A stretch of 60,650 bases of DNA, the filler included, from Polymyxa betae A26-41 (taxonomy: Eukaryota; Protista; Endomyxa: Phytomyxea), in NCBI GenBank assembly GCA_003693705.1. It is 7 parts of 7 records of this genome, joined end to end, with 100 filler letters (N's around TTAATTAATTAA, not from the genome) between each part and the next. Parts side by side here need not be neighbours in the genome. Positions count along the whole stretch, not along the records: positions 23,530 to 45,192 come from RBZT01000529.1; 6 more parts are not named here. One strand, written 5' to 3'. The position numbers and the translations under genes are program-made. Shown here piece after piece: positions 23,530-45,192 of the stretch. Each line of letters opens with the position of its first letter. Position 1 is the first letter of the stretch. The notes beneath the pieces are model-generated. The model saw only the letters and a list, made by a program, of their open reading frames with translations, was not told the origin of the DNA and ran no database searches.

Positions 23530-26500
23530 TTCTCGAGACGAAACCGCTACACCGTGGCGTTTTCATGACGGTATAAGACGCGCCAAGGGCCCGTATTGGG
23601 CGGAAGTAATCGTCTGGATTGGCGTTCCTCCATAACGGGTTCGGCAGCGGATCGGGCGACCCAAACGAGACGGCCTGGCTCCAACTGCAGGTCACGGCGT
23701 TTCACATTAGTCTGCTTTGCTTGCGCCTTGTACGTGGAGGCTGCATTACGCCTCGCCATCTCCCAAGTCGCCTTCAGCCGCGAATTTAGGTTCCGCAACA
23801 ACTGCCGGATTTCATCAGACATCCCGCTCGCCGGAATCTGGACGTTATATCGTGGTGGCCCGCGAAGGTCTCGACCATACTCCATGAAATGGGGCGTTTC
23901 CTTGGTCGTTTCGTTGATTCCCTGCCCGTAGGCAAACTCCAAATATGGAAGTGTACGGTCCCATCGGCGCTTATTATCCTCATCCAATGCCATAAGAAAC
24001 GCGTTCAAATAGCGGTGCGGACGTTCCGCCATGCCATTAGCAGCAGCCCTTTAGGAAACAGTGAAGGCGGTCCGAAATTGGAAGGCATCTCCAAGCGCGG
24101 TCCAAAGATTGTTGCGCCACGTAAGTCCTCGGTCACAAACGATTTTCTCAGGAAAACCCTTCTGTAGGAAGAGTTTTCGGATCAAGACGTCTGCTGCTTC
24201 ACGATCTCGATTTGACCGGAATGAAATGAGTTGCGTGCGTCAAACGGCAAGTAGCTGACAAAACGTGCCGATAACCCTTACTCGTTACAGGAAAATTCTC
24301 CACAAGGTCGACATAGATTACTTGCCAGGGCTCGCTTGCGGCATCCGGATCAAAGAGTTGCCGAAGTCCGTTTGAAGATGATGCAGTCGCCTTGACTTTC
24401 TGACAGGTCTCACAATTTCGGATGTAGTTCGCCACATCTCGCTATATTCCGGGCCAGTACGCCTCTTGTCGCAGGCGGTATAATGTTCGTTTCACTCCAA
24501 AATGGCCTCCTATCAAAGAATCATGAGCACCCTGAAGCCATTCGGTCACATTCGGAACGCAGATTTGTGGTCTCCTTGACTGGCCATTCGTTCGCGGGCG
24601 CCGGTTACGGATGAGGACACCGTTTTCATCGAACTCGAAGTCAGATCGGATGCCGTTCCCAGATCCGCGACTGAAAGCCTCCATAATATCGAACCACATA
24701 GGATCAGCACGTTGTCGATCAACAAGCGAGGCACCGCCCTGTTCGTGTACATCGCTGACGCAGACCACCATAACTCCGAGCTTCGGAACATAATCGTCGC
24801 CACTGTCCGAATCGTTGTCCGAAGTGAGCACGCCCGTCATAGAATGGTCCAGGTTCGGCTCGTCATCATGATGCACGAATTCACAGCGGCTGAGTGCGTC
24901 GGCATTAGAGTTGTCTTCTCATGGTCGGTATCGGATCGTGTAGGCAAAGGGCTCCAACTCTTCCCAGATGCGACAGAACTGCGGATCGTCGGTCTCCTTC
25001 CGAAGAAATTCCTGAGGCCGGTGGTCGGTCTCTATGATGAAAGGACCCCCTCTAGATAACATCGCCAGCGTCGTACTGCCAATCGAATGGCGACGGCCTC
25101 GCCGCGTCTTGCTGAATAATGACGTTCCCGTCCCCGACATTTCTTCGACAGGTACGCGATTGGGTGTTCTTCGCCGTCAGCCGTTCGCTGACTCAATACA
25201 GCACCGAATCCTGCCTGTGAATAATCAGCTTGGACAATAAAAGGTAATGAAAAGTCCGGGTGAGCCAGTACTGGACGTTCCGAGAGTTTTGTCGGAGCGT
25301 TTGGAATGCATGTTGATGGTCGTCCGTCCATTTCCATTCCGCTGTGTTTGCGCTCAGATTGGTCAGAGGAGCCGCGATCATCGCAAAATCGGGAATGAAA
25401 GAATGGTAGTATCCTGCTAGGCCGAGAAACGATTTGAGCTGCTTTTTGTCCGCAGGCACCGGATATTGTTCGACCGCATCAACGAGCCGCTTGTCCGGCC
25501 GAATTCCTTGGTCACTGACGCAATGGCCCAGGTACGTCACCTCCTTTTTTAGAATGAAAGTTTTCTTCGGATTCACCATCAGGTTATGTTCTCGCAACCG
25601 GTTAAAAACCCGGTCCAGTCGCTCCAAGTGATCTAAGAAGGTAGATGAAAACACCACAATATCGTCCATATAGACTAAACAGTCCTAGTTGATTCCTGAA
25701 AGCACTTTGTTCATCAGCCGGCAATAGGTTGCAGGCGCACATTTTAGGCCGAAGGGCATCCGAAAAGGCCGTCGCGCGTCACAAATGCTGTTTTCGGGCG
25801 ATCTTCTTCGGCGACAGAGACTTGCCAGTAGCCTGACGCCATGTCGAAAACCGAAAAATACCTCGTACCTGACATCGCTGCCAGCTGTATCAATCTATAT
25901 TTTCTCCGTTAGTCGCAATAAGTGCGCGACTGCGCTAAGAAGACTGTGGGCAGACTCTTGGACATTCCGTCGGAAGTGATCAGGTCCGGAAGTTGCGTCA
26001 CGGACTGCGGAACTACCTTGGGCCCTGACTCCCTGAAATAATACACAATCGATTCTCAGCACTATCACAGACTCGTTTATTACTACGTAGTGAAGTGCTC
26101 TACAGCGCGTCATCGACTCTCGGTATCGGGTGGGCGTCCATCTCCGTGAGGTCGTTGAGGCGACGGTAATCGATGGCGAACCGATATGTGCCGTCTTTCT
26201 TCTTTGTCAAGACGACTCCGGCGCCCCACGGACTTGTTGACGGTCGAATGTGCCCGTCCTTCAACAATTTTTGAAACAGTTTCCTTAACATACATCTCCA
26301 AGTCCGGATGGCGACGTCGCGGAGGTCCTGATACTGGCTGAGCACCAGGCATGAGCTTGATGACATGTCGTTCTGTAATAGTTTTTCCGAGGGGATTGTT
26401 TTCTGTGCAAAACCTGTCGGCATTCTTCATTAACCATTTCCGCACGAGCCCCTGTTGTTCCGGAGCCAGAGAATCCCAATCGACATTCACTGTTGACAAT

Positions 26501-26956
26501 ACAATTCTCAGATGTGGATCATTCACCCCCAACGTTGGGTCGAATTTCGCGCCTCCGATAGTGATTTCGCAGATCTCGCCGTTGTCTTCTCGAACGGCCT
26601 CCGCTATCACGTCTCCTGGAAGCAGAGTTATCGCCTCATCCGACATGTTCGCCAGCAGTAATCGACACTTCCGATTGCTGAGCTCAATGAGGCCCTCCGC
26701 CACTCTCCCCCTATGTTGACCAACTGCTCGCACTCTCATGACTCCTGTAGTCGCATCGTCAGCGAGGACGTTCGCCAAAACATGATAATTAGGCATCATT
26801 TCCAGTCTTTGTTGCAGTCGAAGACGTACTGGCCCCATAGTGTGGTCCGGTACGCACCACGGAATGAATGTCGGAGGATTGCCAATGTAAACCCCTTTGG
26901 CTACATCGACATGCGCCTGTACTTGCACCAATTTGTCTCGGCCAATGATGACCGGT
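23530..26956 (-). pseudogene. pol: Gypsy pol (RT-RH-IN) with frameshifts and stops
   Basis: Motifs are split over ORFs 26110-26931, 26100-26423, 25193-25669, 25032-25337, 24442-24876, 24199-24435 and 23547-24032. Confidence 0.92.
25886..26104. mobile_element. Solo-LTR-like 219-bp insertion interrupting RT
   Basis: TGTA...TACA termini. It splits the RT sequence VDDAL/AAMSGTRYFSVFD. TSD ambiguous. Confidence 0.7.
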
Positions 26957-27232
26957 NNNNNNNNNNNNNNNNNNNNNNNNNNNNNNNNNNNNNNNNNNNN
27001 NNNNNNNNNNNNNNNNNNNNNNNNNNNNNNNNNNNNNNNNNNNNNNNNNNNNNNNNNNNNNNNNNNNNNNNNNNNNNNNNNNNNNNNNNNNNNNNNNNNN
27101 NNNNNNNNNNNNNNNNNNNNNNGTGCCCCAAACCATCGCGGTCGAATTACAGCAACAGCGGGGAGTCACCGGTTCGTCTCAACAGCACCCTGGGTCCCAG
27201 GGGGTTGGGGCGGCTGTAGCCGTCCCGCGTCC

Positions 27233-28540
27233 TCAGGCCGACGACGACTTGGTCGTGTTGGCCGTGTTGGAAGATCTGGTCGTTGCCGGGCGGGTCGGAC
27301 ATTCGCTCTTGTAATGGCCATGTTCTCGACAGTGCCCGCAAAACGCCTTTTTACGAGCCTTCTCACAATCTCGGAAATCATGATCATTTGTCCGACAAGT
27401 ACGACACTTGTAATTGGACGGTTGAGAAGCCTGGCTCGTACCTTGAGATGCATCCGGAACGTTCGCGTTCACTTTGTGCCTTCGCTTGCCCTCCTGAACC
27501 CGCTCCGCGTAGATACATTCTCTCAAGATCCTGGTCTGATCCCGATAATCCATACCTCTTATACGGTTCTCGAACCCGTATTTACTGTCCAACACCAGTT
27601 TGACGTCCAGTCGTAAGCTTCCACGATAAATGAAATAAACCAGGTCCGGTGTGGCCTTATCCGGCTGATATGTCTGGAAATTATTCAGCGCGGCTTCGAG
27701 TCTAGGTAATAGATCCGTAAGAGTTTCGGTCGGTCCTTGTCTGATCGATAAAGCCGCCTCCTGCCATCGGCCGACCCGGTTAGCTTCAGTCACACCTGCA
27801 ATTCGGTCACGCACATCCACCAGTACAGATTCGTATGTCGAGTCCGGAAACTCGCGCGCGGACGCCTTAATCTGGTTCTGCAGGGTACCGACATGGACCT
27901 TAGTTAAAAGCCAGTGGTGAAGCTGTTGACGATCAATTGATGATTCGGCGCCACGGCAAAGCGCAATAGCCATCTCCAGCCAATCGAGTACAGCTTGGCG
28001 GCCTTTGTCGTCAAAGGGATCCGCTACGCACTGCGGTAATTTTAAAAACGAAATCGCCGACGACTGCGGCTGCACAGGCGATGGCCGGGGCGCGGCCTCC
28101 TCCAAAGCTGGAAGCAATGATCGCACTGAGTTCGGCTGCGGAGTTGAGACCCCGCGGTCCGATGATGACATTGCCGACCCGTCGAGACCGTGATTGCTGA
28201 CATCAGTCCTTTGTCCAGCGCCGTTGCCCGACGCGGGTGCTGGCGACACAACCTCCGATAAATTCGGACGGGCAGCATCTGGCGTTGAATCATTGCGAGC
28301 ATCATGGGCGCCATTCGCGTTCTCCAGTTCGGCTGACGAACCAGACGCCTGAGATACTTGCCTCATCTGTTGTAGCAGCCGTTCTGACAGCGACTCGCTG
28401 AGGGCTGTTATCGCACTCGTCACTGTCGACTGAACCATCTGTGTGACCTGTTCTTGTTGATCGGCTTGCTGTTGACGTAGCTGGTCGAGGTTCTCCTGTA
28501 GATTCGTAAACATATCCATAATATCCTGATTTCTGGTCAT
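27233..28540 (-). CDS. gag: Gypsy Gag, 435 aa
   Basis: Intact ORF with an N-terminal coiled coil, IRQGPTETL motif and CRTCRTNDHDFRDC / CGHCREHGHYKSEC zinc knuckles. Confidence 0.92.
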   Translation of the reverse strand: MTRNQDIMDMFTNLQENLDQLRQQQADQQEQVTQMVQSTVTSAITALSESLSERLLQQMRQVSQASGSSAELENANGAHDARNDSTPDAARPNLSEVVSPAPASGNGAGQRTDVSNHGLDGSAMSSSDRGVSTPQPNSVRSLLPALEEAAPRPSPVQPQSSAISFLKLPQCVADPFDDKGRQAVLDWLEMAIALCRGAESSIDRQQLHHWLLTKVHVGTLQNQIKASAREFPDSTYESVLVDVRDRIAGVTEANRVGRWQEAALSIRQGPTETLTDLLPRLEAALNNFQTYQPDKATPDLVYFIYRGSLRLDVKLVLDSKYGFENRIRGMDYRDQTRILRECIYAERVQEGKRRHKVNANVPDASQGTSQASQPSNYKCRTCRTNDHDFRDCEKARKKAFCGHCREHGHYKSECPTRPATTRSSNTANTTKSSSA

Positions 28541-28783: not shown

Positions 28784-29837
28784 GCAGCCAGTCAGAAAAG
28801 AGATACGCCTCATTGACTCTCTTAGTAAAATCCCCTCTAAAAACGGACGATTTCGGAGAGAGAGCTTGCAGCTCTTTGTCATTCGGTTCTTTGTGCTGAG
28901 GAACCATTCATTACACGCAGCATAATAACAAATAGGAGTTATGTTACCAGAAACTGACATAGACTATCATAGTCTGTAACATTAACAGCATCATGATGTA
29001 AAAAATTGTCCAAATTGGAAAACATTCGTGATACTCTGTATCGAGCTCGTTTCCTTTTCACACCTTTGTGAGAAGGTCCCTGATAGGAAACCATCAGTAA
29101 GAGCTCAGCAGATATTAATAATGGATGACATTATCTATTTCATTCTGCAGACAATATTCCGAAGCTGAAGCTGAAGCAGATCCCGGAATTACTTCTAAAA
29201 CTTGTTGATTTTCTGATAAAATAGCGGGCTGGAATGATATGTTAATAGGATCCAATAATGTTGGATTTTCAGAGCAGAACTCCTACATAAAAAGTTCAGT
29301 TTTGTAAAAGCAACGCATTGAATCACATCATACAATACGATTCGATAATGTATCATGGAACTCCTATATAGTTTGATTAGCCTGAGATATCATCAGAATA
29401 CAGCCGGTCTTACACTCAAAACAGAGGTTCCGCCTTCAGCACTATCATTCATCTCGCCTTCAGCCCCATCATTCATCTCGCCTTCAGCCCCATCATTCAT
29501 CTCGCCTTCAGCACCATCATTCATCTCGCCTTCAGCACCATCATTCATCTCCACTTCAGCACCATCATTCATCTCCAGGAAATTGCTGACTTCATTGTAA
29601 TGCTGATCTGGGTTTGATAAAAACATAAAAGAATCTTGAACGGGTCGGATATCAATGTCAATCAGCAGCTAAACATTTCCACTAAATAATCCGCTACTTG
29701 CGACAGATACAGACGGACGAGCTGACCTCTGACGGATGATCATCCGCACTGTTCATGAATCGCCCCATAATGGTCTCATCAGGGTTGGTGGCGTCGCATG
29801 TGACCAGTATCACGAGGAAGGTCCACGAAGAAAACAT
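28784..29837 (-). pseudogene. Secreted Cys-domain family, copy 1 (5' half, interrupted by Gypsy)
   Basis: MFSSWTFLVILVTCDA signal exon. Later VTDYDSLCQFL|HKEPNDKELQALS matches the copy at 35822-37983. Confidence 0.8.
29433..29576. repeat. Coding minisatellite, 6 x 24 bp (EMNDGAEG)
   Basis: ccttcagc(a/c)ccatcattcatctcg repeated in tandem. Confidence 0.95.
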
Positions 29838-30550
29838 CAATTCCAAAGCGACAAGAACGACACGAAAAGACAGAATCGATTCACAAAATTCCGAGGTCTG
29901 CGCAGTGCGAAAGCTCGTCCTGACTGGCCAGTGCTTTCGAAAAGTTTTTGAGATACACTGAATCAAAGAAGAAGCAAAATCATCGCTCCTATAGGTTTTT
30001 TGAAATTAAAGCCCATAACAGCTTCTCAAGGGTGAGCCCCAGTGTATAGGGATTGTGCGTCGGCAGCAAGGTCCACACGGTGACAGCGTAAAGCTTATCC
30101 CAAAATGAGCGATGAATTGTCGATGCCAGAATCTGCAGTGGGGGTTGTGCGCCCATATGATAGGCGAAACCAAACGTCTGAACTTGAGAAAGTGATCTTG
30201 ACAACGATGGAGATGCTCTACCAGTATCGGAATAAAAACTCCGTTATATATCGCTTTTATTGAACTCTTCATAAACTTTATAAAAACCTTTAAAGCCATA
30301 AAAGCTGTTTTATGACGCCATATCTCAACTTTAGAGAGTGATCTGTGACTTCAAACGCTTTATAAAGAGGTCAAGAGGTCCGTTCCCTCGCCACTTAAGC
30401 CGAAATTGGACGTCGCATCCAATCCTCGGAGGAGCCCTTACGTCGAATTTTGCGCTGAATGAGGTTGAACAGGATTTGAAGACAGAATTGGAGGAATCGG
30501 ATTTGTTGATGTGCGGTGACCACTTTATTGATTCGTTTGTATAATCCGAA

Positions 30551-32025
30551 TCCCTATATTATAAATAAAGTTTGTCGGGAACGCTGCGACTGGGGCCCAG
30601 TCGATGTTAAAGGGACGGCCTCCCGGGCCAGTCGCTGGCTAAAGTCGCGGCACGGCTCCGTCTGGCGCAGCCAGGCGGCCGACCCCCTTCCCTGCTTCCC
30701 AGTTACATATTTCAGGAACCGGTACGTCGGGAGGGAGGCTGCGGAGTCGTACTGGCCTCGGGACGTTTTCTGATCGCACATGTATCGTACAGTGCGACGA
30801 TCGGCAAAATTTCAACGGCGTCACGGCAATAGTGACCGAGTTGGCCCAGTGCGAAATACAAATATTGCAAATTAGGGTTTCGTCGGACAGAGGCAGTCAG
30901 GAAACCAGTCGTAAACCATTGACAGGACGCAGACCGTCACGGAACGCGCCACGGATTGGTCGTACTGGCCACACGACAAAATATTTCGCAATTGTATCAT
31001 AACGTGGGAAGATCTGGAAAATTTCGACGGCGTCACGCAAATATTGACGAAGTTGGGCCAGTACGAAAAACGAATATTGCGGATTAGGGTTTCCATCGAC
31101 TGTGCCAGTCAACGACCTGCCAATTTTGATAGCGAACGATTTTGCAATCACGTATTTCGCTCAAAAAACACTGAAAAAGTCCAGGTTTTTGCGAGCGGAT
31201 TCTGTCCATTTGGTACGTAAAGGACCTCGGACTTTACGTTACGCTGAAAATTGAAAATTCGTCAAATTTGAAGGGGATTTTCGCGTGGACAGTGGCTTCG
31301 CTGGGAGTGACAACTGTGAGCACATCACCGGGGCACCCGCGTCAGCGGGTCGGTGATCGAGCGAGGTAGGAGGCCCGCGAACTGTGGTCACATCGCATCG
31401 CGGAAACGCAAAACCCCCGGTCTCAGGTTGCAGCTAACCGTTCGCCAGCGCGGGTTTTGCGGTTCCGCTTGCTATCGTGACTGGCTTCGCTCCGACATTT
31501 AGGGGCTTTTTTAGGGGTCTTTTATAGGGGTGTTTATTAGGGGTCTTTATTAGGGATTTGAATTTGTTTTTTTTTCACGAGACGTTGTGACGACTGTCCG
31601 GCCGACGAAGGAGGCTGCCAGCGCGGCGAGCGCCGGGGGCTATGGGGGCTCCGCCCCCACACTATGGATCTGCTGAGAAGCCCGTTGCAGGCGGGCCGCG
31701 CGGCGAGCGCCGGCGTCGTGGGGGCAGAGCCCCCACCCATTGCGAAATCGGATTTGTCATCGATAAAAATCGAATCTGTCGTGTTCACAATTCATATAGC
31801 CTCAAAAAGCGGTCCTGAGGCGGAATGACAGGAACCTGGAACGGGGTCCGTGTGAGGTTTCGAATTTAATTTGTTATTGAGAATCGTGTCTTTCGACTTT
31901 ACAATAACACCAAACGCCTTCAATGTGAAACCAACAGCACCGCATCGTACAAGCCCGCCCAAACACAAAGCTGCTCACTAGGAACCCTAGAAGGACCGCT
32001 CTGCGGAGCGGTCTACGCACACTAG
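30551..32025 (+). mobile_element. Non-autonomous Helitron, copy 1
   Basis: Preceded by A, starts TC, ends with hairpin GACCGCTC-TGCG-GAGCGGTC 8 nt before CTAG. Internal TTTTAGGG-like tract. Confidence 0.88.
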
Positions 32026-34546
32026 TCCCTATATTATAAATAAAGTTTGTTGGGAAAGTCGTGACAGGGGCACAGTCGCGCAGCGACTGGGGCCCAGTCG
32101 AGCTATAAGGGCTTGGCCTCCTTGCCTGTCATTGCGCCAAGTCACGGTTCGGGAAAGTCGAGCCGCGAGGCCCCGGCGGAGGAGGCCGTCTGGCTGCGCC
32201 AGGCGGCCGACCCCCTTCCCAGGTCTGTATTTCAGGTACATACCAATAGGTCGGGGAGGGAGGCTACGCAGTCGTACTGGCCTCTGGACGTTGTTTTGTC
32301 GCACATGTATCGTAAAGTGCGACGATCGGAAAGATTTCACCGGCTTCACGGCAATATTGACCGAGTTGGCCCAGTGCGAAATAAGTATATTGCAAATTAG
32401 GGTTTCGTCGACTGTTTGCCAGTCAGGGGCCAGTCAGGGGCCAGTCAGAAACCATTGACAGGACGCAGACCGTCACGGAACGCGCCACGGAATGGTCGTA
32501 CTGGACACGCGACAAAATATTTCACAAATGTATCATAACGTGCTACCGTCGCGGACATCTTAACTGTCATAGATTACTAAGGGAGTAACTTGATTAAACA
32601 AGGCTTGCCCGGGTAACCCTTCTGTCAATATCAAAGGCCGTTTTCGAATAGATCTCGTCGAGAGGAACAAAACAACGGCCCCGGTTTTCAAAATTTCGAA
32701 ATTATCGCGCAGTTTTAATGATATTTAGTTGTAAGGAGACCGTCGGATTGCACCAATAGGCGCACATTTTAGGTTTTTCACCGAAAAAATAAAGTGCGCC
32801 GGTGAAGGGCAGAAATATGCGCAGTCAGAAAAGTCCGTGGACAGCGCATTTCATTTTGGACATGGTACAAATCATCCACGTGCGGTGCGGCTTACTTCAA
32901 TCGTTTGGCATGCCACGAAAACGAAAGCGTTTCGCTCACCTGGCTCGAATGAACGTGGCAAGAACCATCACGGCTTCTGTGGTCTTTGAGGGCGGCGTCG
33001 CTGCTGCTATTATTGCGAATTTGATTTCATTGCAATGTTTTGGGGTGCTGTTAAACTCTACACACGTTTGCATTGCAATTATTCTTTTAACGGTTTGGTC
33101 AAAAATTACCCTTTGCTTTATCTTCTGTTTCCATTATCCTGATTCGCCGATTTGCTCGAAAATGCTTTAGGTTGGAAATTTTTGGCATAATGATATTTGT
33201 TTGCTTAATTGTTCATAACTTTGATTTATGGATGCACATTGGGGAGAAAATGCAGAGTTTAACAGTTAAAGAGATGGAGCGTGCTGTCCTGAAGTTCAAA
33301 AGTCACCGAACGAATCCGTTGTGGTGATATAGAGAGAACAAATAGATAAAAAACTGGGATTTTGCGATCGCAAATTTAATGCGCACTCACGCAAAATGTT
33401 TTTTTGGGCATGCACTTTTGGATTCAATTTGCACCATCCCGGTCGGTTTATGACAGTTAAGATGTCCGCGACAGTAGGTTTTGGAAAATTTCGACGGCGT
33501 CACGCAAATATTGACGGAGTTGGGCCAGCACGAAAAACGATTATTGTAAATTAGGGTTTCCGCCGACTGTGCCAGTCAACGAGCTGCCAATCGTGACAGC
33601 GATCGGTTTTGCAATCACGAATTTCGCTCAAAAAACACTGAAAAAGTCCCGTTTTTTGCGAGCGGATTCTGCCCACTTGGTATGTACTGGCCCGCGGTCT
33701 TCACGTTACGCTGAAAAATTGCAATTTGCCAAATTTATTCGGGATTTACGAGTGGTCTGTGGCTTCGATGGGGCCGACCTGGTACATACAGGCCCGCGGA
33801 CTTTACGTTACATTGAAAAATGAAAATTCGCCAAATTTGAAGGGGATTTACGCGTGGACAGTGGCTTCGCTGGGGGTGGCAACTGTGAGCCCATCACCGG
33901 GGTACCCGCGTTAGCGGGTCGGTGATCGAGCGAAGTAGGAAGCCCGCGAACTGTGGTCACATCGCATCGCGGAAACGCAAAACCCGCGCTGGCGAACGGT
34001 TAGCCGCTACCGGGGGTTTTGCTGTTCCGCTTGCGATCGTGACTGGCTTCGCTCCGATTTAGGGGCTTTTTTAGGGGTCTTTTTAGGGGTGTTGTTTAGG
34101 ATGTTTTTTTACGGATCTTTTTTAGGGTGTTTTTTTAGGGGTCTTTATTAGGGATTTGAATTTGTTTTTTGTTTTTTTGAACAGACGTTATGACGATTGT
34201 CCAGCCGAAGAACGAGGCTGCCCGCGCGGCGAGCGCCGGGGTCGTGGAGGCAGAGCCCCCACCCATTGCGGAATCGGATTTGTCATCGATAGAAATCGAA
34301 TCTATAGTGTTCACAATTTATATATCCTCCGGTCCTGAGGCGGTATGACAGGTACAGTGGACTGTGGTCCGTGGGAGGTTTCGACTTGAATTTGTCATTG
34401 AGAAGCGGGTCTTTCGACTTTACAATAACACCAAACGCCTTCAAAGTGAAACCAACAGCACCGCCCAAGCACAAAGCTGCGCACTAGGAAAAGCTTAGCA
34501 CACTTCCCAAGAAGGACCGCTCTGCGGAGCGGTCTAAGCACACTAG
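32026..34546 (+). mobile_element. Non-autonomous Helitron, copy 2 (head-to-tail with copy 1)
   Basis: Same TCCCTATATTATAAATAAAG start, same hairpin plus CTAG end followed by T. Carries an internal duplication and a nested element. Confidence 0.88.
32546..33474 (+). mobile_element. Non-autonomous Tc1/mariner-type element nested in the Helitron
   Basis: ~26-bp TIRs CCGTCGCGGACATCTTAACTGTCATA / TATGACAGTTAAGATGTCCGCGACAG, TA duplication, transposase C-terminal relic FMDAH..ERAVLKFKSHR. Confidence 0.88.
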
Positions 34547-35821
34547 TCACCATAATTAGGATATTCACGCCCTTTATATATTCTAAAGGGTTGCGCCTGA
34601 TTCCTTGTTACAGTGAAATTTTAAAGGGTTGCGCCTGATTCTTCGTTACAGGCTTACAGTGTGATCATGTGGTGGCGCCTCCTTATCATTGACATTACAT
34701 AGATTGAGACACTCCTCTGTTTGCACTCCATTGGCATCATTAACATACACAGGTCAGGGCGAGCGCGGCTGCCGAACGAAGACACGGGTGGCGCCCAGAG
34801 CATACAGAGGCTCTTCGGCAATACCTCATCCAGAATGACCATTTGAAGGCGCTGACAGGCCGTGTCGTGAAATCGAATTGTCCGATCTTTGCAAATATAG
34901 ATATGAACATTTTAGGCGGACGTGTTCGCTCGATCAGAGAGAGACTTTCCAAGGATTAATAAAATTTGAAATTGTATTTATGACTTCTTTGAATGCAGTT
35001 TATAGAAAAGGGTTCGAATAACGCATCGATTTTAGCGTGGAGCTCCTGAATGTGACAATATAACAGAGCCAAATGTCCAGAAAAGGGCAACATTGATAGG
35101 GAGTAAGACCATAAAAATTGACCAACATTAAGATTTTCTCCTTCATCGGTCTGACGAATTCACCGACCGCAACGGAAAAGAAATAGTTTTGGTGGTGCTA
35201 TCACACGTTTGTCATACCTCAATGAAATTCAAGGTATCAGAAAGTGGCCACGAGCTGATCGTCACATTGGAAGATAAATTTTCCTCTGCTGCGTCGTAAA
35301 TCGATCCCAAAATCACAACGGTTGATGATCTCATCAATGATCCTGAGAGCAAGCTTTTGAAAGCCATGTTTGGTGAAGCTCAGAAACCTATGACTTACAC
35401 TATACAGCTGGGTATGACGGTTGCAACTAACCCTGTCAAACGAGCAATCAAGGGGCCCAATGGAGAAACCGTTCCAAACGTGATGTTACTCACAGTTCGA
35501 AACGATGATGCTGACTCAATGGAATCACTGTGATTTGAAATGTGTATGTAGTTGCAATATAAGTTTAATACATTTTCAGTTTTTGCAATGTTACTGTGTA
35601 ATGTAAATTTCACTTTTCCAGCGACAGCCATGGTACTTTACCTCACCTTCCTGGTAGAAAACGATCGAGCTTACAGTGGCTGGCAGCTCCATCGGATTGA
35701 TAAATTGCGCCATAAAGGTCTCATTGGTAGCGTCATCAATAAAAGCGTTTATGTAAATAACCGAATTTCAAAGATGCAAACAATTTGAGCTACTGACAGT
35801 GTTATCAGACTTAAGTGAAGA

Positions 35822-37983
35822 TTAGTTCATTTCTGGCATTTCAGTTGTCATTTGACATAGAGCTGGACATTGTTCTGACAATCCAGAACAATATTTCTGT
35901 CGGAATTGATCGTGGTCGATTTGATCTCCGAAAGTCTTGACAAAAAGCTCCACATCGTTATTAAAATGATATTGAAGGCAGCTCATTATGGGATTCACAA
36001 TATTAGTCATATAAGCGAGTAAACCGGAGGAACATTTCACCTTTTGTTGCTGAACTTGATCTGACAGGACTCGAATACAGTGAAGAAACGTCTTCTGAGA
36101 GATATTCAAAATCCAACAAAACCATTCGAAGTTATATCATACTGTTTGAAACCCTTTGATTTGATATCTAAGTAAACAATCATAGAGATTGTCGTGAACA
36201 GAATCTCGAACAAACTGGATACCACCAAGACCATTGGTCTCTGCAATTTGCTTTTCAAATCCACAAAGTGAACCTTCATTGATGTTGTGGGAACATTTGT
36301 CATGAAATTTGGAATGTGGAAATGGGCTTCTCCATCGAGACTGACAAGTTTTCAGATCTTTCTTGCAGCAGATAATGAGACAGCATAAAATCGGGACACA
36401 ACGAGCCTCCCATCCCAGTTACAACCATTTCTAGTCCATCCGTCCTCGCGAGCCCATACAAATTTCTTATATAAGCTGCAGATTAAAATGAGCTTCTGCA
36501 AAGTATTCGTAGCTTGAGAAATTTCACTGGTTTCTGTCAATTCCATCTCGACACCTTTAACTTGAATAATCAACGGATTGCTGGAGCCAGAAACCGCTTC
36601 ATTTCTACTTATGCAAAATGGCGGGTCTGTGAGGAACGCGCGTTCTTCGGCATCAGGCATTTTGTTCTGCAGAGAATTTAATAAGCACAAAGAAGAGCGA
36701 ATCCGAAACCTACCAGAAAGAAGCAGAGGCTGTCGTAGTCCGTGATATCGTTATCGAAGTTCAGTACCCTCTGCAAATATTGTTTTCGTTTTCGGCCTGA
36801 TTCAAAATGCAGCAATCGGCGGCGTTTCCGGGATTCTGTATCCGTGAGAGCAACATTCGTATCAGTTTCTGTAACAGGACGCTTTACAGGAAGCAGAGAT
36901 TTTAGAGGAGAGTGATTCTGGGTCTGGATATATCCACATTTACCTCCGGAGCATTTCACAATGAATTGAGAATGCGAGAACGGATTTCCCGAAATGGACT
37001 GGAACATCTCGAGATCTTTCGAGCAGCAATGTATGAGACAGCGAAATACTGGAACACAGACACCGTTCATCCAGTCATTCATAGATCGATTGCATTTCAA
37101 TAGGTCGCGACGAAGCGTCCGGATTGCGGTTAGTTTCCGATACAAACTGGCTATTAATATGAGCTTTTGTAATGTGCTCTTAGACAGAGCGATCTCCGTG
37201 ATTTCATGTATGAAAATATTGGTGCCATTCAGATCCACTGTTAATGGCTTCTTGACTCTTTTGGTATAATCCACTCTACAGCGGGAAGATTGCTGTGAGA
37301 GAGCTTGCAGCTCTTTGGCATTCGGCTCCTTGTTCTGAGAAACCATTTAATACAGCAGACTTCTGATAGAATTTGTTTTTACCAGAAACTGACATAGACT
37401 ATCATAGTCTGTAATATCAGCAATATTATGATTCAGAAGAAAGTCCAGATTCGATCGCGGAAATGATTCTGTTAATTGTTGCTCTGCAGGACGTGGAGCA
37501 GTTGATGTGTGAATAGAACCCCCTAAAGACAGATTTTCGTTGCAGAAATCCTGAAAAGAAAATTTCAGTCAAGAAATGGGCAACATGCTGCATCACATCA
37601 TACAGAGGAATTTGATAACGTCTCATATGGCTCCTGAACAGTATAATTTAGCCTGAGATATTCGCAGGATACAGCCCGTCTTACATTCAAATCGAAAGCG
37701 TGAGGGGAAGAACTTCGTCTTTCACTACCGATCTGGTCCAGGATATTCTGGACCTGATTGTGATGGAAAAGAGGCTGATTATCTGTATCTTGAGCTGGTC
37801 GGATATCAATGCCGCTCAATAACTATCCATTTCCCATTAATGACGAATCGACGGCTTATACAGAACGAACGAGCTTACCTCGGCTGGCTGCTCCATCGGA
37901 CTATTAATAAATTGCCCCATAAAGGTCTCATTGGTAGCGTCGCATATCAGCAGTATGACGAGGAAGATGCAGGAAGAAAGCAT
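35822..37983 (-). CDS. Secreted Cys-domain family, copy 2 (most complete, ~7 exons, one +1 frameshift near 36413)
   Basis: MLSSCIFLVILLICDA signal, ~50-nt phase-0 introns, two DYDSLCxFL|NKxP motifs, three LQKL..PV..CL..(C/H)..D...F...G..F.H..F...C units (third partial), RKRRR and RKRK motifs. Confidence 0.8.
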
Positions 37984-39387
37984 CTTGTGCATGACGACGT
38001 GTTTGACGAATCAACCATTCGATGAAGTCCGGGGCGGCGTATTGCGCAAATATCACAAAGAGACTGGTTCCAGTAGAAAATATCAGGAAAAAATCCCGGC
38101 TACAGACTAAGATTTTGACGGAGAAATTGTATCCGTAAAACTGCGAGATTCTCCGATTGACCATGTACCGGTAGGTAGATCAATATTTTACCATACGAAG
38201 TCACACGGAGAAATTTCCTGAAAGTGATGCAATTAATGAGATGGGTAAAAAGGCTGCTGATATCGGCGGCGAAATCGAGCATGACCCGGTGAAGTCATCA
38301 TACAAAGTCACACTGAACCAAGCTGAAAAACGTCTTAGTAAGAGATTTGTAATGGATAATGTCAAAAGAAGTCATTTTACAAACTATCCCGATAGAATCC
38401 CGCTCCGTGATGGATATCTGAGAGTCCGACAGAGACATGGAGTCACAGATATTCCTTTAAAATCGATAATGTGCTAGTAAATCGGACACGAGCAGGCCAT
38501 ACTCGATAGACGGTACATATTTAGAAACTTTGCATCGAAGAAAATACTACCTGTAGACACTGTAACGGAATAATAAAACAGATATCCTGAAACAATCGAT
38601 CATCTGCAGATTCTGTGCAAAAACCTCAAAACGCAATTCAGGAAATATAGACTCCAGTATAAAAGACGAGAAATCAGATTTAAACAATGCATTCTAAATA
38701 GAGAGAAATTCACGAGAACCATTCGGCAAGCAGCTCATAAGCACGGATGCTTCATACAGCAAGGTAGTGATGGAATCCAGTACGGATGTAATGTTAAACG
38801 AGTCCCAATCTGAAAATGAAAATCCCATGAGTGATGCTTCAAGTACGTTAACTCTGCTGAGCTATAATGCTGCAGTACTGGCCCTTCACAGCAGAATTGC
38901 GAATCTTGCTGTTGGAAGGGTTGCAAGAGCTTCCAGATTTGAACACGAACAACGTCACTGAATCTTTTTGTATGCACACGATAGACTGTGTAACATTCCA
39001 TCATTATAACAGGAAATCTACAACAAGCTGCCGATGGTATTTCATCTGTTTTCGTGCGAGTTGCGACTACTGCGATTGTTTGTGTCCACTTGTTCAACAT
39101 TGGTTGTTTTCTTGTATTCCACAATCGCTGTTTGTGGTGATTAATTATACAGTGCTAAACAGCTTGTTTTCTTCATATATTAACTAAATAACATCCACGT
39201 AGTCCGATATTGAGTGCCGAAAAATGTTTGTGGGACTTTTGCTCCCTGTCATGATGGAGCAGTTTTTGTTTGGTGAGCCTGAAGGCCGAAATGTAATCGC
39301 AGTGTCCAATCGTCATGAATCAGCAGACCCATCTCATGGAATCTGTAAGTTTTCGCAGCTCTTAGTTCTTGTTAACCCGATCCGGTT

Positions 39388-39900: not shown

Positions 39901-40749
39901 AACCCGATCCGGTTCTGAGCGTTATGAAGAGTGTTAACACTAACAGGCAACACGGACAATCATCCGAGCAACCTCAGGACATGCTACACAAACGATTCAG
40001 CTGGCATTGAATCGTCCAATGTTAGGTCTACGGCTCCAACGAAGTGGGAAACACGTCCTGCGAATGGCTTGACGGATTCTCTCAGTTTGGAAGAACGTGC
40101 TGGAAACAACATCTTTTACTGGCGTTCAGGTGCAGTAGCCGCTCATGAAAGAAACGGCCGTCATGCTTGTAGACTTGAATGAAGTTTGATGTCCACTGAC
40201 AGCCAGAGAAGCTTTCTAGGCCTTTAGTGAAGGTGTATTCCGCGGCATTTGGATGCATTGGAAGGAATCTGATGTTTTCATCTGGCCTGAGGAAATGTGT
40301 CAGATTTTATAGATCCAACATTCAAGTGCCTTCAAACTCGCACAAAAAAAGCCATAGACGCACACCGTGGACCAAGGTTTAATCGAGGTGTTTTCAAAAT
40401 CGGCAAAAATGGCGTGCTGTATTGGGTTTTTAAGGCACTTTAAGCTTGTATTAAAGCATCGATCTAAAGCGTCGGAATGCGCAAATTTGATACCCATATT
40501 GTATCTTGAAGAAATTCTGTGATATATTCACATCATATTTATAATGACGAAACCACGGATTATATATTGTGTGAAGCTAAGCGATTACGATCAGGGTTTC
40601 CTTTCCACAAAGCACATTTTGTTATCCATTGAGACATCATCACAAGAATTGACACAATTTTCGCTTCGAAGCGATCTCCATTTTCAAATCAGATTTTCAG
40701 ACATTCGGTTCGCCATGTCCACGCAGTTTCGCAACCCCGACAATCAGAC

Positions 40750-43000
40750 TTCATTTGGTGTGGCCTAGCGATTGTCATCCTGATCCTGAGCCTATCTGAG
40801 TGCTTATCTACATACAGCTCTTCGCCTGGTAATGTTACATTCACTCTGGAACCGCCCCCTGATACGGTCTGTCCTCTCGCCCTCCCTACTACAGACACCA
40901 GAGTAACGTTATTCTGTCAGAAACATGTCACATCTCTTTATCATGCATTATAGGAACCGATACTCTATGATCCATATCCTATACATGATTTCTCGGATCT
41001 TCCCGATTTTAATAACCTCTTTGATCCCTTATTTGATCTGGATGTAGATTTTCTTGTATGAAATGATTATATAACTGGGATATTATGAAATTAATGAATA
41101 TTCAGATACTCAATGAGAATGAAATTCCTGAAACGATGGATATTCCACCTGATATGGGAAATTTATCATCATCAACATCTTTATTTCACCTTACAGATAA
41201 TGTTCCGGATTTACGTTCTATTCAGGAAACTACAAATGTAATGTTTCCTTATCAAGTCTCATGCCTTAGATTTCTCTAAGATTTTTCGTAATCAGAATGA
41301 TGAACCAGTTGAAACTATTTCCCGGAAACGTCCTCGTATTGAGGAGACATCATCGGCAGCCGACCTTCAGTATTCCTTCAATCATAATGTGAATGATATC
41401 AATGATTATAACAGTCTCTGCAAGTTTCTGGTGAGTTTTGAGCAGCCTTTCTGTCCGGCTGTATAATAACTGTAGATTAGATCAAAGAGCCGAATAATGA
41501 GGAACTTCAGTTTCTGTCTTCAGGGTTCAATGGTGATGCAGGTCAATGCTCCAAGATCAACTCTCAATTAGTTATTAATGTGAAAGGACATGATCTGGAT
41601 CTGAGCGAAATCAAACGAATCCGTTCTGCTCAGAGCACATTACAGAAACTGATTCTGATTGCGAATTTGTATCGGAAATTGATCTGGGCCTCCCGAAAGT
41701 ACGGATGGTTTTGGAACCAAGTTGATGGGAAAATACGAAATTGGATGTATATTGTGTGTCGTCCTGTATTGAGATGTGTCATGGAATGCTGTCAGAAAGA
41801 TCTCCGGAGATTTCAGATACTCTGGGGGAATCCCTTCAAACATTACCTTTACTTTGAGAAACGTTCCGGACATGAATGCCAATCCAAATTGTCCGCTGCC
41901 GATCACTCTACGAATCAGGTCCCAGATGGCTCTTTTGTCACTCCTCGTCTTCAGAGTGCCAACAAACCGTCCGTCAAACGGAGGAAATTGAGTTCTTCAT
42001 CAAAGAAGCTCGCTCAGTCCGTGTCTAACTATGTTCCTGATTTGATGAAATTGTGTGATTTTGGTGTGAACAAGATCACAGACTACACAACTCTGTGTGC
42101 TTTTCTGGTGAGATTTATTCTATTTAAATGCGGAATCTCACATTGAAACTTTCATTCAGAAAAAACAGCCTGATAATGACGAGTACGCATTTCTTACTTA
42201 TACGAACATATTTTTCCCATCAAAAGGGAGCAGAAAAAAGCCAAACGACCCCACTATTATCACAGTTCTCAATGATCAGATCATATTGACGGAAACCTCG
42301 GAATTTTCGGTTTCCAAGACCACTTTAGAGAAGTAGATATTGGCGGCCAGTTTATGTATGAAACTGGTTCGAGCCAAGATTACCGACCCGAAATTGAGTC
42401 TGAGACGTGAAGGCTGTGGTGATTGGCTCTATCGTGTGTGTTACCCTGTATTTTCATGTATTACAATATGCTGTAAGAATGATCTTCGAATTTTTCAATC
42501 TCGATGGGGAAATCCGTTTCCTCATAGCCGTTTCGTGGAGCTTTGTTCTAGGCAAAATGGCAAGAGTAATCAGTGCGGATTTGAGACTCTCATTGTCAGG
42601 GACAATGAGAGATATTCCATCGAATCACAACTAGTTCGTGATAGAAGAGACCCTTCTCATTGTGTATTGAGATATTCGATGATAGGATTCGAGACGGTAC
42701 TACTGTGTTCAAGGAAATTCGTATTTTCTAAATATATCACAGAAGCTCATATTGGAGTGTGTTCAGCGAATGTTTAATTCCCTGAAGAAGCAGAATTTGA
42801 TTCCATCATCTGATCTGAGTGAATATCTCGGAGATTCTCTAAATTCAATATTATACTGTCTTGAACATCATTGTAATAATGATGTTGAATATTTCACTCA
42901 TATATTTGGACATTATATAGATCATTATCAATTTCGGCAGAATCACTGTCCTGGACATTCTGGACACTGTCCTGCTCAATCTGCTCTTCATGCTGCTTAA
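40750..43000 (+). pseudogene. Secreted Cys-domain family, copy 3
   Basis: Hydrophobic leader LAIVILILSLSECLS, STLQKLILIANLYRKL..RPVLRCVMECCQKDL..WGNPF, second and third units to 43000. Damaged start and TAG near 42335. Confidence 0.8.
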
Positions 43001-43732: not shown

Positions 43733-43939
43733 ATGTTTTCTTCGTGGATCTTCCTCGTGATACTGAGCACATGCGATGCCACCAACCCTGATGAGACCAT
43801 TATGGGGCGATTCATGAACAGTCCGGATAATCATCCGTCAGAGGTCAGCTCGTCCATCTGTATCTGTCGGTAGTAGCGGATTATTTAACGGAAATGTTTA
43901 GCTGCTGATTGACATTGATATCCGAACCCGTTCAAGATT
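43733..43939 (+). pseudogene. Secreted family, copy 4 (signal exon only, truncated at MULE)
   Basis: MFSSWIFLVILSTCDATNPDETIMGRFMNS. Near-identical to the reverse complement of 29633-29837. Confidence 0.85.
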
Positions 43940-45192
43940 TGTAGCGCGCAGATTACGGAGCGCGGCCTCCCAACCAACCCTAACCCTCGATAGTTGCGAG
44001 CCACGCCTGATCGCCGATCGAGAGCCGCCGCTGCACGAGTCAATACCGAGGCGTAATGACTCACCTGACCAGTACCAGTACTCTGACCCACCCGATTCTA
44101 TTTTTTAGTATTGAATCGGTTTTACATTACCGATTTACATAAACAGGGGAGATTCTCATTGGCTGGACGCCCGAGAACGTCTGCTGCTCAGGAGTCCCAA
44201 TCCTATCGCCATTCGACCCTGTGAGACGCGTTCCAGTTCCTGGACTAAACAAATGAGGTTACCGTAATCCAGGCTTGCGTTAGAATTCAAAGCGCATGCC
44301 TCTTCATTTAGGAGATGCACTTGCGCCAAGAATTCTGCACGCGTAGAGTCTTGCTTGGACGCCTCCTGCGCGATAGTCTCATGGAGTTCTTCATCAGCAA
44401 CAGCCTGGGCAGCGCAGTTGACACCAGCCACAATCTCCAGATCTGCTGGCGTCAGGAGTCCTTTCGAAGTTTTGAGGTTCTTCGGGTCAAACCATTTTTG
44501 GTGAAATGCAACTAAAAAAACGTTAGAAACAAGTCCAATGCGAATATTTCAATAGTTACCGGCAAACAAATGTTTGCAATGATGATCACAGCTTATGTAA
44601 TCGTGGCACGTACAACTCCAGCAATGCCGGCATGAACGACATAGCTGATACGCCATGCAGGGCAAGTCCCTTTTGAAGGTGTCGCTTACACCATTCTCCA
44701 GATCAGCTTCCTCGTACTCGTTGAAACAGACCTTATTGGCTTTCTGTGCAACAAAACACTTTTTCTGTCCGTCGTAATCAATAGAAACAGCGACTCCAAC
44801 ATCCATTGGAAACATTTTCGACGGTTGTTCCAGTAGATTTTTGACTGCTCTCTTGAACCTCTGTCTTTCACCGTCGTCGTTTGGCTCGTGGTGACACGAG
44901 TTTAACGATTTCGAGATGATGTTACGCTCCTCCACTATGAAACAGTTGCGGACCTTTTTTCAATAACATGCTCCGACAGTTTCAGAAAGCGCTGCTCTTG
45001 GAATGCTGTGGGTTTGTGTCCCGAATGCGCTGCGATGTGCTCGACGTCGACCTCGCCAGTGTGTAGTATGGTTGCCTCACATTAGAGACAAATAGACAAA
45101 CTGAGTCAATCGATGTCACTGATTGATCCAGTATATTAATCCATCTGAACGAGTCCGTGGAAAACCCTAGGGCCACTGTGAAAGACACCCAA
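43940..45192 (-). mobile_element. Internally deleted MULE-like transposase remnant
   Basis: WRKY/FLYWCH-like end TGEVDVEHIAAHSGH joined almost directly to a SWIM finger region CTCHDY..CKH. No DDE core seen. Confidence 0.65.

Follow-up and report, generated by a model that had tools for sequence, protein, structure and literature searches.

The window considered here is a stretch of DNA of 60,650 nucleotides, and the analysis covered a 21.6 kb piece of it, with the family copies from 45959 onward set aside. Five copies of one gene family (A to E) were found in the piece, lying among pieces of mobile elements. The features, with coordinates counted along the window, are:

23550–28540, minus strand: decayed retroelement of gypsy type, in which gag-like, reverse transcriptase and integrase segments are recognisable (PF00078 relatives; Integrase_H2C2, E 4e-9).
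28785–29837, minus strand: copy C, 5' part of a paralog, ending early in the unit-1 exon beside the gypsy element.
30550–34554, plus strand: repeated non-coding elements with Helitron-like ends, the class being assigned from the ends only.
35660–35734, minus strand: copy E, a relic from the 3' half of exon 1, just beyond the copy A stop (87% identity to copy A).
35822–36094, minus strand: copy A exon 7, containing the stop and the divergent unit 3, in which the second putative ligand position is His.
36143–36666, minus strand: copy A exon 6, unit 2, frame-shifted near 36400.
36714–37334, minus strand: copy A exon 5, encoding 207 aa that comprise unit 1, a basic linker with RKRRR and RKRK, and the second YxxLCxFL motif.
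37383–37550, minus strand: copy A exon 4, with the first YxxLCxFL motif terminal, at the GT donor.
37604–37633, minus strand: copy A exon 3, putative 30-nt linker, its junctions as in copy C.
37685–37822, minus strand: copy A exon 2, variable linker; the start of this exon is coding in the intron-free relative L002.
37879–37983, minus strand: copy A exon 1, ATG at 37983 and hydrophobic signal-peptide-like leader; ATG and leader are common to copies C and D.
40741–43000, plus strand: copy B, full-length paralog of seven exons, the late introns as in copy A.
43733–43939, plus strand: copy D, exon 1, intron 1 and the start of exon 2 only (93% identity to copy C over 274 nt).

Copy A spans 37983 to 35822 on the minus strand and is split into seven exons by six GT-AG introns (56, 51, 53, 48, 47 and 48 nt); the linker exons 2 to 4 were placed from splice signals and comparison with paralogs rather than from RNA. 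Exons 1 to 5 and exon 7 each hold a whole number of codons and no internal stops. Exon 6, at 524 nt, is not divisible by three, and the two halves of its unit 2 match the family profile in two different frames, so that unit 2 is not intact; the initial annotation had not mentioned the break. The hydrophobic leader described there begins at the ATG, with a best 11-residue hydropathy of 3.28, and is rare by chance: values of at least 2.6 occurred in 2 of the 275 Met-started 30-mers of the piece. The two DYDSLCxFL motifs are likewise present, each ending exactly at a GT donor. Three units, the third of them divergent, were confirmed by a profile (HMM) of the unit, which gave 148 bits for unit 1, 47 and 50 bits for the two frames of unit 2, and 27 bits for unit 3, versus a maximum of 9.6 bits in 20 shuffles, unit 1 itself being included in the profile. 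The length of about 80 aa first given to the unit has to be revised, the repeat being about 130 residues with a YxxLCxFL motif upstream. The linker had been called acidic; in copy A (exons 2 to 4) it is only mildly so, with 16 D/E versus 5 K/R. As for the basic clusters ascribed to this locus, RKRRR does lie in copy A, together with RKRK and KRVKK, whereas KRRK and RKRPR are located in copy B. Short coding-like frames on the plus strand flank copy A at 38241–38813 and 35100–35533; they gave no Pfam matches and are possibly pieces of other orphan genes.

The related copies that had been noted nearby proved to be copies B, C, D and E. Copy B has an in-frame stop at 42334–42336, and a search for an in-frame start for its leader found none. 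The linker exon of copy C (29431–29575) contains a 24-nt unit repeated six times and encoding an acidic 8-residue repeat, which copy A does not have. None of the five copies in the piece is intact (0/5), and A to E are probably pseudogenes. For copy A itself, a dead gene is a good deal more probable than a misassembled one.

Coding constraint was assessed exon by exon. In all six informative comparisons dN/dS fell between 0.18 and 0.37, as expected of purifying selection: exon 5 of copy A gave 0.35 against the metagenome relative L001, 0.29 against copy B and 0.27 against L002; the part of exon 6 before the break gave 0.26, exon 7 against copy B 0.18, and exon 1 against copy C 0.34. That this is a real coding family is as good as certain. 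Purifying selection among the paralogs indicates that the family was protein-coding over a long time; the local copies then died later, or the break in copy A could be an assembly error.

The surroundings of these copies are rich in transposons. The gypsy-type retroelement abuts copy C; it has a gag-like open reading frame of 435 aa with a zinc knuckle, and an assembly N gap lies near 26960–27120. Between 30550 and 34554 are two to three related tandem elements in which a GC-rich hairpin is followed by CTAG and the next unit opens with TC, ends that would resemble those of non-autonomous Helitrons; their interior holds a 43-nt palindrome as well as tandem repeats with units of 13 and 102 nt. 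A 128-codon frame on the minus strand (44549–44935) has a terminal CxCxxxxxxxxxCKH that by eye is like the SWIM finger of a MULE transposase; it gave no Pfam match. A 200-nt stretch with TG...CA ends (43940–44139) starts exactly at the end of copy D and could be a solo LTR; a target-site duplication was looked for there and none was seen. With five broken copies lying among gypsy and Helitron-like elements, the earlier description of an expanded family in rapid turnover was borne out: the family undergoes repeated gene birth and death among transposons.

Such a setting raises the question of whether the family is itself carried or encoded by a mobile element (a Helitron capture or a transposon's own gene) and was copied with no gain to the organism. 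The company of gypsy, Helitron-like and MULE-like pieces and the breakage of five out of five local copies are what this explanation has in its favour. It is very improbable when set against an intron-rich, leader-bearing gene whose dN/dS stays in the purifying range across deep divergence, copies around which no shared terminal repeats were found, and searches that returned no transposase, Rep or helicase matches and (in pattern scans of low sensitivity) no relatives on viral or prokaryotic contigs.

The exon organisation of the repeat is regular. A pattern search found a GT donor directly after the YxxLCxFL motif in 12 of 12 genomic places, and the same holds for both places in L009; the intron is missing only in L002. 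In the loci read, the motif precedes the units and no motif follows the last one. L009 contains tandem exon modules of 82% DNA identity. The module begins and ends in phase 0, so duplication of such an exon would preserve the frame and yield a variable number of units, and the family appears, as judged from these junctions, to have grown by duplication of phase-0 exons. Copy B shows the exon structure of copy A, as does an independent contig from metagenome data.

Relatives were sought exon by exon; the word search was length-limited and may miss full-length annotated relatives, which a HMMER scan would not. Exon 5 of copy A matched 18 proteins among 1.84 billion representatives, none of the 18 with an informative name and none labelled Plasmodiophora, Spongospora or Polymyxa. 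The further unnamed relatives, seventeen in number, comprise metagenome sequences, one intron-free contig and two UniParc records (UPI0006B2D629 and UPI0006B2D107). Scanning contigs of metagenomes, viruses and prokaryotes by pattern, a method of low sensitivity, added no further relatives. The closest relative of exon 5, L001 (55%), lies on a 990-nt metagenome contig and has two introns as in copy A, and L004 (60% GC) carries leader, linker, motif and unit in that order. The intron-free contig L002 (Logan SRR18189690) lacks both introns, which makes it transcript-like, and has three breaks of its own; its positions 1–1501 look like a transcribed or processed pseudogene. Downstream of the family member on L007, positions 584–886 appear ankyrin-like by eye and gave no Pfam match. 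In the intron-free relatives P0038, P0043 and P0050 the motif runs straight into the unit, as predicted from the splice junctions, which suggests that these relatives are transcripts. P0043 and P0050 are the UniParc records, and P0043 is open across 369 residues with three units.

The lineage of the family is approached from several sides. One JGI sample contained five contigs, each with a different family paralog, and the same sample holds the nearest relative (71%) of the gypsy reverse transcriptase of the piece. The coding parts of these paralog contigs vary in GC content between 0.40 and 0.61, which probably reflects the presence of several species. UniParc identifiers of the P0043 and P0050 type presumably belong to the 2015 Spongospora subterranea transcriptome. 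The introns of the family (47–56 nt) are compatible with plasmodiophorids but also with other small eukaryotes; introns of this size, and the gypsy and Helitron-like elements, do not point to human DNA. On balance a plasmodiophorid source is somewhat more likely than not. Both that transcriptome data set and a mean intron length of 60 bp for P. brassicae are described in PMC4471660.

The unit was modelled with AlphaFold (pLDDT 80.7, pTM 0.71) as a short helix, a beta-hairpin, two long helices and two short helices, forming a globular, helical domain with a conserved hydrophobic core. In the model of a natural intron-free relative the motif forms a helix of pLDDT about 82 after a linker below 50; a confident helix following a disordered linker suggests that it packs on the domain. 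The initial annotation had recognised no named domain, and none was found: Pfam gave no match to the exons, the relatives or the members of the alignment, and a sequence-profile search of PDB gave none at E 10. Foldseek with two models returned nothing from PDB or BFVD at E 0.001. An ESM Atlas feature search yielded only matches below 0.9, under the threshold for recognition, and the fold search of that atlas with two models reached a TM of at most 0.34. The best VIA-align scores (Z 5.7 and 4.1) were to generic helix bundles such as the MIT and toxin membrane-localisation domains, and were not trusted. The repeat domain thus matches no named family or solved fold, although weak fold scores are no proof that the fold is new.

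Across the units a small set of residues is conserved. All 27 of the 27 units have Cys99; at position 103, 23 units carry Cys and 4 carry His; His121 is retained in 21 of 26, with one or two further Cys after it; and each unit has 6–9 Cys in total. No catalytic signature was seen in the repeat domain. An exchange of Cys for His speaks for a metal ligand over a disulfide. The four units of His type, however, fall into a single clade (support 98/96), and the change from Cys to His was maybe one old event; it counts as one line of evidence, not four. From this pattern we lean somewhat toward zinc, rather than disulfides, as what the cysteines of the domain would hold.

Disulfides are central to another explanation, namely an extracellular or structural protein of the organism itself (a spore wall, cyst coat, adhesive or parasite-host interface protein). 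Such a protein would have a leader and many cysteines, as the family does, and exon 5 of copy A carries three N-glycosylation sequons; cysteine-rich proteins of the apoplast are, moreover, mostly disulfide-bonded (bioRxiv 10.64898/2026.06.11.731755). The terminal units, however, have His in place of an otherwise invariant Cys while His121 is mostly retained, the domain is predicted to be globular and helical around a conserved hydrophobic core, and frequent gene death would suit arms-race genes better than structural ones. We regard this explanation as improbable.

The remaining reading is of a lineage-specific, secreted, modular effector-like family belonging to a protist-like eukaryotic parasite, with a root-infecting plasmodiophorid the likeliest candidate; taken as a whole, this reading has about even odds. 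Its parts differ in strength. The leader claimed for copy A has counterparts in copies B, C and D and in L004 (hydropathy 2.1–3.3 over these five), and the family proteins are, judging by it, very probably secreted. Action on the host is somewhat more likely than not, and effector status is plausible from the architecture. On this reading the leader would export the protein out of the parasite and into the host cell; for an intracellular parasite, delivery would need no extra uptake motif (PMC8358996). Each domain would be held by a structural zinc, bound by the Cys-x3-Cys/His on one helix together with later His/Cys residues, and would act as a non-enzymatic binding module for host proteins, with avidity or additional targets gained from the tandem repeats. 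Some members may be routed to the nucleus by the basic clusters of their disordered linkers. There is precedent for cysteine-rich effectors that bind zinc (bioRxiv 10.64898/2026.06.11.731755).

The initial annotation had gone further and proposed that these effectors target the host nucleus. In favour of entry through the basic clusters and action there (e.g. on transcription or the cell cycle) as the job of the family as a whole, clusters were seen in 7 of the 13 linkers lying ahead of the motif versus 3 of 20 domain cores, a rough comparison since the core pattern was stricter; copy A, moreover, has RKRRR and RKRK only 12 residues apart, and phytomyxids enlarge host nuclei by a mechanism that is unexplained (PMC11835965). 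Short basic runs are nevertheless commonplace in disordered linkers, those seen here vary in position and are missing from the matching linker of L001 and the first linker of copy A, and the fold searches gave no match to a DNA-binding or known nuclear fold. As the explanation of what the family does, host-nucleus entry is unlikely. Nuclear action of the family in any form is doubtful, given the shifting position of the clusters and their absence from the matching linker of the nearest relative.

Comparison with known effector systems gave likenesses of plan rather than sequence. The CCG (CHxC) effectors of Albugo are also secreted and expanded, with repeated cysteine-bearing helix-plus-sheet modules (PMC12503489), but their cysteines are modelled as disulfides and no sequence link to the family was found; the motif CxxCxxxxxG occurred in 0 of 29 rows, and that reading was rejected. 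The zinc-binding rust and blast effectors AvrP, AvrSr27, AvrSr13/22/33 and AVR-Pii are secreted and cysteine-rich with Cys/His ligands, and some have domain duplication; we propose that the present family works on the same principle (bioRxiv 10.64898/2026.06.11.731755); the domain described here differs in being larger and mainly helical, with no sequence or fold match to PDB chains. The RAYH / AvrSen1-like family of Synchytrium, a gall-forming biotroph, is similarly lineage-restricted, expanded, helical and secreted, yet has a different repeat and exon structure, and the RAYH motif is absent from our alignments, so this reading was likewise dropped. The plasmodiophorid ankyrin family and PBZF1, a secreted zinc-finger effector with a MYND finger and RxLR (PMC8358996), share the probable lineage; MYND or ankyrin Pfam matches in the family were none, and an RxLR reading was rejected. 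The spacing Cys...x16-His-x6-Cys at the unit end is like that of the BIR (IAP) domain, where the ligands would differ in placement, those of the family lying in a long helix of the model, not a beta-hairpin; no Pfam or fold match to BIR was obtained, and the pattern Cx2Cx16Hx6C was found in 0 of 29 rows, against a BIR reading.

In the accessible parts of the plasmodiophorid secretome surveys no description of the family was found. The survey tables give identifiers, not sequences, so family members may sit there as orphans; 49–69% of plasmodiophorid secretomes are orphan, and ankyrins, LRRs, kinases and RxLR-like proteins make up most of the effector families described. Should the family prove plasmodiophorid, these crop parasites would gain a well-delimited family of repeat-domain proteins, found in several species and with a fold so far unmatched. 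The unit profile and structural hypothesis can be tested immediately against public genomes and transcriptomes of infection. The boldest version, a new zinc-binding helical fold, duplicated by exon, in a conserved nucleus-entering effector family of root-parasitic protists that secretome surveys have overlooked, is a long shot; if true, such a nucleus-entering family could underlie the unexplained endoreduplication and cell enlargement of the host.
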